Assembly (NCBI GenBank): GCA_002794465.1
Contig: MTSL01000219.1
Coordinates: 41,459 to 73,458 of the forward strand
DNA: 32,000 nt
Origin: Paramicrosporidium saccamoebae KSL3
Lineage: Eukaryota; Fungi; Cryptomycota
Direction of reading: 5' to 3'
Part shown: piece after piece, positions 27,031 to 30,532 of the stretch
Numbering within the stretch: the first letter of the stretch is position 1
How the letters are laid out: each line of letters begins with the position of its first letter
Position numbers and translations under genes: made by a program
The notes under the pieces: model-generated
Databases searched by the model: none
The model's input: only the letters and a program-made list of their open reading frames with translations
Told to the model about the DNA's origin: nothing

Positions 27031-27623
27031 TTAGTCTAATTTTATGACTTCCAGTTCAATGGGGCACAGGACTTTTCGCATTGCATATGCATCTTCGCCG
27101 TCAGCGTAATATTTTTCCTCAATTCCAGAATTTAGGAAACCCAGAGTTTCTTTGTAAAGATGAAGCGCGGCTTTGTTGCTTTTCCGTACATGGAGAGTGA
27201 CATGTGCTGCATCGTACACTTGGCACATGGCCCTTTCTAAACCATGCATTAGTTAGGATAAGGTGGATGGTACGGGATTGGCGCATCAATCTTTCTGCAA
27301 GTCCAAGCCGCCGATAATTCCTCATGACTGCTACCGATGTGATGTGCCCATGGGGCTTGGACGAAGAGCCCTCTTCTTCCCTAAAGGTTCAGATACACAG
27401 GTGATATACTACATTTTGGCCAAGACATACCCGACTATGGTGCCTGAATCGTCTTCTGCCACCCATGAGCACTGGGGCCAAGAGAGTATGTGATAGATGT
27501 AATATTTCAGCTGGTAGTTTTCGGGGAGATTGTGAAGGTTACAATTCTGAACCTGAATCAGGTCTTCAACCTATACATTCAGTAGGATGGATACTAGCCC
27601 ACTTTGCACGGCCTAATGTTCAT
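27031..27623 (-). CDS. NAA10: NatA catalytic subunit Naa10/Ard1 (about 163 aa, 3 introns)
   Basis: Spliced [85 protein letters not shown] and [12 protein letters not shown]. Confidence 0.95.
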
Positions 27624-27661: not shown

Positions 27662-28287
27662 ATGATAATACATAGGAGGCATGCAATCCAATCTTTTTTG
27701 TCGAAAGTCTTTATCCATACAATGCCCCTCCCAAAAAGTCACCGTGACCAAAAACTTATCCCGTAGCCAGAGATTGTAGGCTAATATTAGATTCACAGTT
27801 GAGCAGGTATACTCTGTAATCTCAGATGTGGACAAGTATCCCGAATTCGTTCCTTGGTGTGTTGGCACACAGGAGACTGAAAGATTCTTGACGGATGCCG
27901 ACCAAAAGTTTGTTGAGGCGGGCGGAATATCTGCGGCAAACACAGTTAGATACATTGAGATGGCGGTTGGATTCAAAGCTCTCAATGACAAGTATGTTTC
28001 CCGGGTTCTAAGCACTGCAAACGAGAGCGTCTACGTATGCTCCATTGAACTTTTTCTCAAAACCATAGGCAGAGGCCATTGATGCGCGTCTCTTTAAGCA
28101 TCTCGTTTCAGAGTGGCGCTTTTCTCCTGCAGGAAGCTCATGTCTGGTCAATTTCAAAATCGACTTTGAGTTCCGATCATATCTGTATGCGTATTTTGCA
28201 AACATGTTCTTTGCAGAGGTTGCGCTTAGAATGGTGGATGCATTCGAAAAGAGATGCCACGAGCTCTTTGATTCCAAGTCTAGTTAG
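27662..28287 (+). CDS. COQ10: Coenzyme Q-binding START-domain protein Coq10 (about 187 aa, 2 introns)
   Basis: Spliced KLIPFTVEQVYSVISDVDKYPEFVPWC, MAVGF, YVSRV, LFKHLVSEWRF, VNFKIDFEFRS and MVDAFEKR. The N-terminus is presequence-like. Confidence 0.9.
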
Positions 28288-28320: not shown

Positions 28321-30058
28321 TTAGAGTTTTGAATAATCATTAACTATACTACTGGAGTGCTCTCGCCGTCTACAACAAAGCGCCTTACCAATCAGTGTCA
28401 GTATGTGTCTTCTGAAGAAGAATATGAGCAGCAATGCCGGGAGAGAGCCAAGAAGGACTCCAACGAGCAGGGTAGTCTTTCGAGACTGGAATGGCGAAGG
28501 AATGGTTTTGGAGATGGGGTTTTCGTCGACTGGACCATCGCTATAGTCTAGTATCATCCGGCTTCCAAATTCTTCTGGGAATACAGCAGCACTCTAGAAA
28601 TTTAGTGGTGTGAAAGCCAAGAACCTCCAAAGTTATAATCACAGAATCAACAGTCTTGCAATCTTCACAAAATGGACGTATAAACTTCCAGGAAACATTG
28701 ACGATTCCCGCTCCCAGTCGAATGGCTGGCATGGGGATTTCTGGAAGGGATGCATGATCATCGTGATCTGCCGTCCATGAGTAGCTCTCGATACCATTTA
28801 TGGACACGGTCAAACGATCTTGATCAGCAAGCGGCCCGTCGGTGCTCCAGCGGAAAGCCAGCACAGGGTTCTGAACTTGATGGCTCTATGAAGGGTAAGA
28901 TTTTCCTAAAGAGAGTACAATATTTAGCCGGACGGTGTAGTCAGACTCTCCCGAATCCATCTGAGGCAATAGCCGCACAGAATCGCGCGTTATTAACCAC
29001 GGGTTGCAATTTGTTACATTTCTCATGGCGCAGTCACGAAATATGTATCGATCGAAACTTCCAGACTCGGGACGTTCATTCTCCAGACAGCGTAACGGCT
29101 CACATGACGTGGTGCTTTGCAGAACTGTGATTCCCGTGGCATGCACCGTTCTTGCCTGGACGTTCACCCAATCAGACATGAACAGGATCTCTTTTGCAGC
29201 TCTCCTGGCACCTGGGCATAAGTATGTTGAATTATATGGTGGAAAGGAGCCAAGGCTAGAACAATCTGGATCACTCTTAATGTAAATGATTCTTTGGCAT
29301 CGGCCAAGCCCAATCGGAACAGATAGATCTCTTAAATCTTCTAACGTGCAATCACATGGAACCATATATGTCGAGTTTTTTTGCACCAAAAGTCTTGGCT
29401 TGATGCATATTCTACCATCCAGGACCTCATATGTCATGGATCGTCGACGGAGCCCGTTTGGAAAATGTTGACAGTGCCCAAATCTGACGAAATAGTCATC
29501 GTTTCGACATTCTATACGATCACCACTGGCCACTATGATTTTACCTACTTTGGGTGCATTCAAATTGTAATTAAAGTCTTCATCGATGCATTGGGTGTCC
29601 TTGAGGTTGGATGAAAAAAGTACATCGCTGGTAGATCCAATGTTCTCATTTGTACACTGATCCATTAGCAAATGTCTATGGTGAGCGCATAGCATGGCAG
29701 AACCTGACAGAGTGGCAAATCCCAACATGTTCTCCAAAGGAACCACAGTCACGAGCGCTCATCAAGCACGAGGCCTTCATGAGTGCCTCTAGACACTGGG
29801 CGTCCTTGGCTGTTGCTGCTATCTCTTTGGATTATGACGCAATAATTACCATGTACTTTGGACGTAGTCAAAGTCAATTTTTGCAAGATTCCTCCTACTC
29901 AATGCCGAAATTTTGTTGAAATATTTCCCACACAACTCTGAGTCCTTGCTGAAGGACTGACAACTGTCGGATCTACTAGCGAAGCTATTACTGGTGAACA
30001 GTCCTCCACGCACAAAATGGAGCAAAACCAATAGGGCAATGCTCATGCCCAAAACCAT
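28321..30058 (-). CDS. Cys-rich type I membrane protein (535 aa; introns 29819-29856, 29676-29703, 28886-28918, 28594-28624): Frizzled-like CRD, ELAPOR/KIAA1324-like modules, TM helix, YSKL tail
   Basis: Four ORF fragments join in frame via GT-AG introns (1608 nt). Signal peptide MVLGMSIALLVLLHFVRG, Cys-rich ectodomain, TM LLVGVLLGSLPALLLIFFF followed by RRH, and C-terminal DYSKL. Domain assignments come from cysteine spacing and remembered motifs only. Confidence 0.7.
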
Positions 30059-30113
30059 TGTGCCCGGTTGTAAACAAAAAAGTGTATTTATCCAAGTCGA
30101 CACGAGTCTAAGA

Positions 30114-30532
30114 TTAACCAAACGTATTCTCACCAGAATAAACAACGTAGAGGAATCCATCCGGGTCATGCTTTTGAATGTAAACGGTGGAAATTGACTG
30201 GTGAGCGGGAAGAAGTGAATTATTCACAAACAGAAATATCGAGGTCTGTGATGAGACTTTTATGCGATTTCGGATAATTGTGGTCAGATTCCCAATAGTA
30301 AATTCCCCAGGAACCAAGAGCCTTTCGGAGGCCAAGTCCGGAAGATCGCTACTGGAAAGTTTTTCGCAAATTACCTAAACATTGGGCACATTTGACCTTG
30401 CTACTGGGATTCTGTCAGGATATTGCCCCCGAAGGTTGTCCGATTTACTTTTTCTTTCTTCTATAAATAAGATAAAGACGCCAAGTTAAGCATGCTACTT
30501 TGGTCGTACTGAAGTTTGAAACTGGTAGACAT
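30114..30532 (-). CDS. ATG8: Divergent Atg8-family ubiquitin-like protein (116 aa; introns of 38 and 30 nt)
   Basis: Spliced MSTSFKLQY...YPDRIPVICEK...LLVP...IFLFVNN...DGFLYVVYSGENTFG*, collinear with yeast Atg8 residues 1-116. Confidence 0.93.

Follow-up and report, generated by a model that had tools for sequence, protein, structure and literature searches.

Frizzled-type (FZ) cysteine-rich domains (CRDs) form a superfamily that extends to RECK and to the fungal Mid1/FAM155 proteins (Pei & Grishin 2012, cited in PMC3945613). ELAPOR1, or inceptor, is a receptor of the trans-Golgi network (TGN) and endolysosomes associated with AP-1, AP-2 and AP-3 (PMC11659164); hairpins stapled by disulfides lie on either side of its beta-rich globular domains and make contacts in the dimer (PMC12337314), and two structures, 9VQM and 9VQL, represent it. 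Both systems bear on a gene of Paramicrosporidium saccamoebae KSL3, an obligate parasite of amoeba nuclei from the sister lineage of Microsporidia (PMC5701793). The gene occupies positions 28321-30058, minus strand, of a 32,000-nt stretch, here called the window, which corresponds to positions 41,459-73,458 of contig MTSL01000219.1 (assembly GCA_002794465.1) and consists of eukaryotic DNA with a G+C content of about 45%. A first-pass annotation of the window, made from the letters alone, had read the locus as a hidden gene in which a Frizzled-type CRD is fused to ELAPOR-like modules and a sorting tail. The gene proves real and masked by a wrong database model, and a receptor function is proposed for its product.

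Gene structure and conservation

Removal of four introns joins five exons (30058-29857, 29818-29704, 29675-28919, 28885-28625 and 28593-28321) into a single open reading frame (ORF) of 535 codons plus stop, which runs from an ATG at 30058 to a stop codon ending at 28321, the span and the number of junctions given in the first-pass annotation. Intron 1 (29819-29856, 38 nt, GTACAT...GATAG) is in phase 1 and intron 2 (29676-29703, 28 nt, GTTCTG...CATAG), where the unspliced frame runs into a stop, in phase 2; intron 3 (28886-28918, 33 nt, GTACTC...CATAG), with a stop codon inside it, and intron 4 (28594-28624, 31 nt, GTTCTT...TCTAG) are both in phase 0. Exon 2 lacks a separate start codon.

This stretch is one real gene of P. 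saccamoebae under purifying selection, as is evident from comparison with related sequences. A 1432-nt contig from Joint Genome Institute (JGI) metagenome 3300042203, L001, carries an orthologue with about 89% DNA identity, and single-base indels between the two fall only within introns 3 (1-nt deletion in L001) and 4 (1-nt insertion). Mismatches are distributed 40/30/135 over codon positions 1, 2 and 3, with third-position bias in every exon, and after splicing the L001 orthologue has no stops and a protein identity of 87%. The ratio of nonsynonymous to synonymous substitution rates (dN/dS, Nei-Gojobori) is 0.105 overall, comprising 0.076 for the N-terminal domain, 0.057 for the cysteine modules, 0.12 for the beta domain and 0.35 for the stalk. 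The intron 1 donor GTAC is kept in L001 and a rival donor, GTAATT, is destroyed there; within intron 2, 8 of the 28 bases are changed. In a third species, represented by JGI contig 3300063079 (L002), introns 3 and 4 stand at identical sites with lengths of 28 and 33 nt. Intronless relatives supply further witnesses: P0007 reads 'CNSVRHLILDHC' straight through junction 2, and P0003 and P0006 read 'LNISSEISRPVA' and 'YLESLAIIP' straight through junctions 3 and 4. Three of the four junctions are thereby confirmed, and the different splicing into separate genes that had been named as the danger to the model is not what these relatives display. Intron 1 is the sole junction without an intronless witness, and its acceptor is a tandem AG (GATAG|CAG, window 29816-29818), both sites being in frame and one residue apart.

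In the databases the gene product is best matched by P0001, 'hypothetical protein PSACC_03686 [Paramicrosporidium saccamoebae]', a 375-aa model of the same locus (window 28321-29752). This deposited model is wrong, being a truncated and partly frameshifted version of the gene. It starts in the wrong frame inside exon 2, reads through intron 2, removes 33 codons conserved in five relatives along with intron 3, and closes with exon 5 read in a shifted frame, so that signal peptide, first two exons, transmembrane (TM) helix and tail are all missing from it. In this sense the gene had indeed been hidden.

The six introns of two genes (window 28594-30498) are all 28-38 nt long and all end in TAG; their donors begin with GTA or GTT and have little further consensus (GTACAT, GTTCTG, GTACTC, GTTCTT and GTAGCA twice). 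Introns like these are easy for gene finders to overlook, and other membrane proteins of the P. saccamoebae genome may be hidden likewise.

The N-terminal domain

The N-terminal domain (aa 33-135, window 29588-29962, minus strand) spans introns 1 and 2 and has the cysteine spacing C-x9-C-x32-C-x8-C-x6-C-x9-C-x10-C-x21-C, exactly as first described from the spliced translation; the choice of intron 1 acceptor sets the C2-C3 spacing, which is x32, or x31 with the site 3 nt downstream. It holds eight cysteines, not ten, with an arginine at C7 and no counterpart of C9. In the Fz8 CRD, C7 and C9 are reportedly disulfide partners. The core of the domain, C76-x8-C85-x6-C92-x9-C102-x10-C113, is kept in L001 and P0007 and is in register with the Frizzled spacing C3-x8-C4-x6-C5...C6-x3-C7-x6-C8. 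Alignment to a hidden Markov model (HMM) of Fz, built from eight CRDs, each verified by Pfam as Fz at 56-127 bits, places C76, C85, C92, C102 and C113 on C3, C4, C5, C6 and C8 and the arginine on C7.

Against 24,736 Pfam models the isolated domain matches FZ_RECK (PF23298, E=0.012) and Fz (PF01392, E=0.12) alone. The corresponding domain of the L001 orthologue matches FZ_RECK at E=0.019, and the whole 535-aa protein gives one weak match, again FZ_RECK (E=0.082). None of ten controls (nine cysteine-fixed shuffles and the reversed sequence) gives an FZ-type match.

Several observations weigh against membership. Both scores are under the Pfam gathering cut-offs (16.0 vs 27 bits for FZ_RECK, 13.4 vs 32.1 for Fz), and P0007, a more divergent copy of the domain, has no Pfam match. 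The score of 7.0 bits against the home-made Fz HMM is reached by 11 of 1000 full shuffles but by 122 of 1000 cysteine-fixed shuffles, and most of that signal is therefore cysteine spacing. Profile-profile comparison of the CRD with Fz by hhalign is not significant (P=0.2-0.25), and a profile search of the PDB with the domain finds nothing. Among the relatives, the available sequence of P0003 begins at the following module.

Other candidates for an eight-cysteine domain, namely CFEM, WSC and Mid1, were ruled out, as none gives a Pfam match (for Mid1, no PF12929). The cysteine spacings of CFEM, WSC and Mid1 differ from that of the window domain.

What stands of the proposed Frizzled-type CRD lacking C7 and C9 is thus the register of the cysteines and the fact that the only Pfam matches, all sub-threshold, are to FZ models; hhalign, the PDB search and the cut-offs did not bear it out. 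A divergent Frizzled-type (FZ/HFN superfamily) CRD is the best available hypothesis for the domain and is slightly favoured, its membership not being established. FZ-type CRDs beyond animals are already described, as in fungal Mid1/FAM155, and the window domain would vary a known kind rather than found another. If it is of the FZ type, it adds a protein that is neither a G-protein-coupled receptor nor a Mid1 to the FZ-CRD proteins on the fungal side of the opisthokonts. It would also be a candidate receptor amenable to experiment in an obligate intranuclear parasite allied to Microsporidia.

Membrane topology and cytosolic tail

The two highest hydropathy peaks of the protein are its TM helix (aa 485-505, window 28414-28476, TTLLVGVLLGSLPALLLIFFF, 21 residues) and, second, a signal peptide (aa 1-19, window 30002-30058, MVLGMSIALLVLLHFVRGG; peak at aa 2-20) with an inferred cleavage site. 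The segment between them has 22 cysteines in even-numbered groups, and five N-x-S/T sites are present, three in the membrane-proximal domain (N325, N357 and N421), one in the linker between the two cysteine modules (N206) and one in the second module (N254). Hydropathy, even cysteine parity and these sites point to a type I membrane glycoprotein with a luminal or extracellular ectodomain. The TM helix is conserved, including an LP motif, in L002, P0003 and P0006.

The cytosolic tail (aa 506-535, window 28324-28413) contains a juxtamembrane CC pair (aa 518-519, window 28377-28372) and ends in YSKL (aa 532-535, window 28335-28324). Juxtamembrane cysteine is kept in all four known tails. The window tail ends in ...SSSIVNDYSKL and that of L002 in ...SSSAIIDYLKL; the tails otherwise differ, and a YxKL at the extreme, free C-terminus is shared by two species. 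P0006 has an acidic dileucine, DDDDELL, in its place. Short cytosolic tails with either YxxPhi (Phi, hydrophobic) or [DE]xxxL[LI] are thus found in the window protein (YSKL), L002 (YLKL) and P0006. A dilysine signal for retrieval to the endoplasmic reticulum was ruled out, lysine being present at -2 only. The TM helix, cysteine-rich modules and C-terminal YxxL described in the first-pass annotation are borne out, the protein being of type I, and the particular strings that it listed (CRNDDYFVRFGHC, CTLEDL, ILFMSDW, NCNPW, RLGAGIVNVSWK, the hydrophobic helix and terminal DYSKL) are all found in the spliced protein. Two points tell against a sorting role for the tail: motifs of the YxxL and dileucine types are short and occur commonly, and neither YxxPhi nor dileucine is present in the tail of P0003.

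Proposed function

Taken together, these features suggest a type I glycoprotein in which a divergent FZ-type ligand-binding head is joined to an adaptor-sorted tail, the whole serving as a receptor for cargo or ligand; a probability of roughly 0.45 is attached to this reading. Ligand binding would fall to the N-terminal FZ-like domain as the head; as with other FZ-type domains, the ligand might be hydrophobic or lipidated. The domain would keep four of the five canonical disulfides, the C7-C9 pair having been lost together. The juxtamembrane cysteines of the tail are probably palmitoylated. The C-terminal Yx-KL, or the acidic dileucine in a related lineage, could be read by the mu and sigma subunits of clathrin adaptors, and the receptor would in that case shuttle among Golgi, plasma membrane and endolysosomes. 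For such a trafficking-receptor function, ELAPOR1 with its AP-1/2/3 association offers a parallel, and homology is not argued from it.

The alternative that survives best is a lineage-specific parasite surface protein, such as an adhesin, a host-interaction factor or a membrane protein of the spore or sporoplasm, with folds of its own; the Frizzled and ELAPOR likenesses would be chance or convergence and the tail would have no sorting role. This is judged less likely than the receptor reading, with family distribution as the first point in its favor. A full HMMER scan with P0001 of 1.84 billion representative proteins gives 13 matches, all of them environmental ORFs from metagenome or Logan assemblies except the query itself and P0013, a 1134-aa bacterial repeat protein that was dropped as a relative, its match to 'SYSWT' being spurious. 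Homologue searches based on a word index, whether with the protein or the family alignment, return P0001, P0002 and P0005 only, two scans of metagenome contigs (with family patterns and with P0009) find nothing, and sequence and profile searches of the PDB with protein, family and CRD give chance matches only. The survey of taxonomic range that had been called for turned up the family in Paramicrosporidium-like sequences only: it is a small orphan family, without a Pfam model, confined to Paramicrosporidium-like environmental sequences. Consistent with folds of its own, every Pfam match in the family stays below cut-off, the hhalign comparison with Fz lacks significance, and the HMM and beta-domain comparisons with ELAPOR described below are at chance level. 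That the organism is an obligate intranuclear parasite (PMC5701793) also speaks for this alternative. However, the ectodomain dN/dS of 0.06-0.12 is low for a host-interface protein in an arms race and argues somewhat against this explanation, as do the placement of both weak Pfam matches in the same FZ clan with none from the controls, the persistence in divergent relatives of the module similarity to ELAPOR (see below), and the conservation of Yx-KL at the extreme C-terminus.

Within the family, P0004 with P0006 and P0009 with P0010 are ORF fragments sharing a contig, and each pair is probably one split gene.

Comparison with ELAPOR

The ELAPOR strings quoted in the first-pass annotation are all correct in real ELAPOR sequences, including YKYSKL beside the TM helix of mouse ELAPOR1 (9vqm). 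Real ELAPOR fragments fall into the Pfam families GBD_ELAPOR1, GBD_ELAPOR1-like_3rd, TNFR_ELAPOR1_6th and MRH_ELAPOR1_9th, and these families match none of the 12 members of the window family. HMMs of two ELAPOR units give the real sequences scores no higher than those of shuffled decoys. When the family is compared by hhalign over its whole length with two ELAPOR alignments, the result is not significant (P=0.3 and 0.41), the best local segments being those that the first-pass annotation had named. The beta domain compared with ELAPOR MAM1 and MAM2 gives P=0.15 and 0.31, and block-shuffled and reversed controls do equally well or better. The galactose-binding-like/MAM domains (PF23031, PF23032) are not detected in the window family. 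For the MRH domain (PF23087), whose absence had been noted, there is no match and no room between beta domain and TM helix. TNFR/ephrin-receptor-like repeats (PF23091, PF07699) likewise give no Pfam match, module B scores P=0.85 against the TNFR-like region of ELAPOR, and ELAPOR is not among the matches when P0001 is searched by phmmer against the 1.84 billion proteins.

One short segment behaves differently. Module A (aa 162-196, window 29405-29509) is a hairpin-like disulfide module of the form C-x3-DY-x6-C...NG...Y...C, conserved in P0003, P0004, P0008 and P0011. Its roughly 35 residues score 17.8-18.0 by hhalign against the hairpin mini-domain of ELAPOR (P=0.0033 and 0.0029), a score reached by 0 of 150 and 2 of 200 column shuffles. 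Without the window and L001 sequences P is 0.0023, so divergent relatives retain the similarity. Of nine pairings of cysteine-rich profiles, the one between module A and the ELAPOR hairpin scores best, followed by module B with the same hairpin profile (P=0.019 over 12 columns). Weighing against the result, the module is short, was picked after the first-pass annotation had pointed to it, and was one of those nine pairings. The profile similarity suggests that the disulfide hairpin modules of ELAPOR and module A may have a common origin.

By the domains present, the window protein is not an ELAPOR, because the defining domains of ELAPOR were tested for and not found; the resemblance comes down to a single short module, suggestively similar, and four tail residues in common. 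Of the ELAPOR-like modules originally proposed, then, only the hairpin has profile similarity on its side (P about 0.003), and the remainder finds no backing in Pfam, HMMs or beta-domain profiles. A true minimal ELAPOR homologue, made of a hairpin, a degenerate second hairpin, a MAM/galactose-binding-like sandwich, a TM helix and YSKL, with an FZ-CRD gained and the MRH domain lost, is accordingly held to be improbable. It would account for the scores of modules A and B, for the coincidence of the best local hhalign segments with those first named, for the real ELAPOR strings including YKYSKL, and for an order of hairpin, cysteine linker, beta domain and TM helix as in ELAPOR1; standing against it are the Pfam families with 0 of 12 members matched, HMM scores no higher than those of shuffled decoys, a beta domain no closer to MAM1 or MAM2 than its block shuffles or reversal, and a phmmer search that yields no ELAPOR. 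If the ELAPOR link were confirmed by structure, the origin of the hairpin module would move well outside animals; it is now a lead, not a finding.

Slender odds are given to the full fusion as first conceived, an unrecognised architecture in the sister lineage of Microsporidia that would combine an FZ-type lipid- or ligand-binding CRD, an ELAPOR-derived hairpin and beta-sandwich and an adaptor-sorted tail. Were it true, FZ-CRDs and ELAPOR-type endolysosomal receptors would both have been in the early opisthokont toolkit and have been recombined in Rozellomycota. Finally, that the spliced model is itself an artefact of separate short genes or a decaying pseudogene has hardly any probability left and is already essentially refuted, since the different and shorter GenBank model, the unusually short introns (28-38 nt) with weak donor consensus and the unwitnessed intron 1 are outweighed by third-position bias in every exon, a stop-free spliced orthologue, dN/dS of 0.105, intronless relatives crossing three junctions, intron sites kept in L002 while lengths differ, and comparable introns (38 and 30 nt) in the adjoining ATG8, which make tiny TAG-ended introns normal here.

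Other regions of the protein

Module B (aa 213-259, window 29216-29356) is a disulfide module of the form CDC...C...C...C with cysteines conserved across the family; a Pfam search with it gives nothing. The membrane-proximal domain (aa 265-446, window 28591-29200) spans introns 3 and 4, has four conserved cysteines and a CLENERPES motif, and is the best-conserved part of the family. It is followed by a stalk (aa 447-484). AlphaFold2 (AF2) models of P0001 with a 4-row alignment and of exon 3 alone have predicted local distance difference test (pLDDT) scores of 33.5 and 30.7, both too poor to use; ELAPOR sequences were kept out of the alignment as circular. In the low-confidence model the exon 4 region forms beta strands at a pLDDT of about 50, and the membrane-proximal domain, of some 180 aa, is probably all-beta. 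Foldseek searches of the low-confidence models against the PDB return generic beta-sandwiches only (best E=0.16), ELAPOR1 not being among the matches. Within this domain, the C431/C434 pair of a CEDC string (aa 431-434, window 28630-28641) is not conserved, the equivalent being HEDR in L001 and IADK in L002, and it could represent a disulfide or metal site peculiar to this species.

Neighboring genes

Upstream on the same strand lies ATG8 (30114-30532; three exons, introns 30498-30461 and 30442-30413), which matches Pfam ATG8 at 115 bits. Its stop codon (30116-30114) is 55 nt from the ATG of the receptor-like gene, the distance and identity first reported. The adjacency is genomic context only, and the contigs L001 and L002 both end before the ATG8 side. 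The ATG8 protein ends in ...SGENTFG directly before the stop; the lipidation glycine is thus already exposed at the C-terminus, and no Atg4 priming cleavage would be needed.

Convergent with the receptor-like gene and downstream of it is a COQ10/START-like gene (window about 27800-28287, plus strand; Polyketide_cyc E=0.0035, below cut-off), which has a short intron of its own and ends 33 nt from the receptor-like gene's stop. Further downstream in L002 are an acetyltransferase and a DNA polymerase epsilon B gene. An acetyltransferase-like ORF, assigned by eye, is present at window 27031-27249 in matching position and orientation, which suggests that downstream synteny is conserved between the window and L002.

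Comparison with known systems

With Frizzled-type CRDs the window domain shares its location, N-terminal and right after the signal peptide, its length of about 105 aa, and a spacing (C1-x9-C2-x32-C3-x8-C4-x6-C5-x9-C6-x10-C8) that is within or on Frizzled values; its only Pfam matches are Fz and FZ_RECK. In contrast to them, it has eight cysteines rather than ten, scores under every curated cut-off, and is not a Mid1 match. It also heads a single-pass receptor with unrelated modules, whereas the partners of Frizzled-type CRDs are seven-transmembrane, kinase, netrin or Kazal regions.

Lysosomal membrane proteins of the LAMP1/2 and CD63 class carry a C-terminal YxxPhi signal. The window protein resembles them in its short cytosolic tail with a free C-terminal Y-x-x-hydrophobic, which in its case is conserved between species. 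It differs in that its tail has 30 aa rather than about 10, no glycine precedes the tyrosine, and the ectodomain is unrelated.

Compared with ELAPOR1/2, the window protein is half the size, is without TNFR-like repeats and MRH domain, shows no likeness to MAM1/MAM2 (GBD_ELAPOR1 families in Pfam) that sequence or profile comparison could detect, bears an extra N-terminal eight-cysteine domain, and has its YSKL at the very C-terminus, whereas that of ELAPOR1 is beside the membrane. Nevertheless, both are of type I, with the pattern C-x3-[DE]Y-x6-C...C (in the window protein a hairpin-like module) before a domain that is beta-rich in ELAPOR1 and probably so in the window protein. One TM helix and a YSKL-containing tail are likewise common to the two, and the adaptor-associated TGN-endolysosomal role of ELAPOR1 is the one that the window protein is proposed to play.

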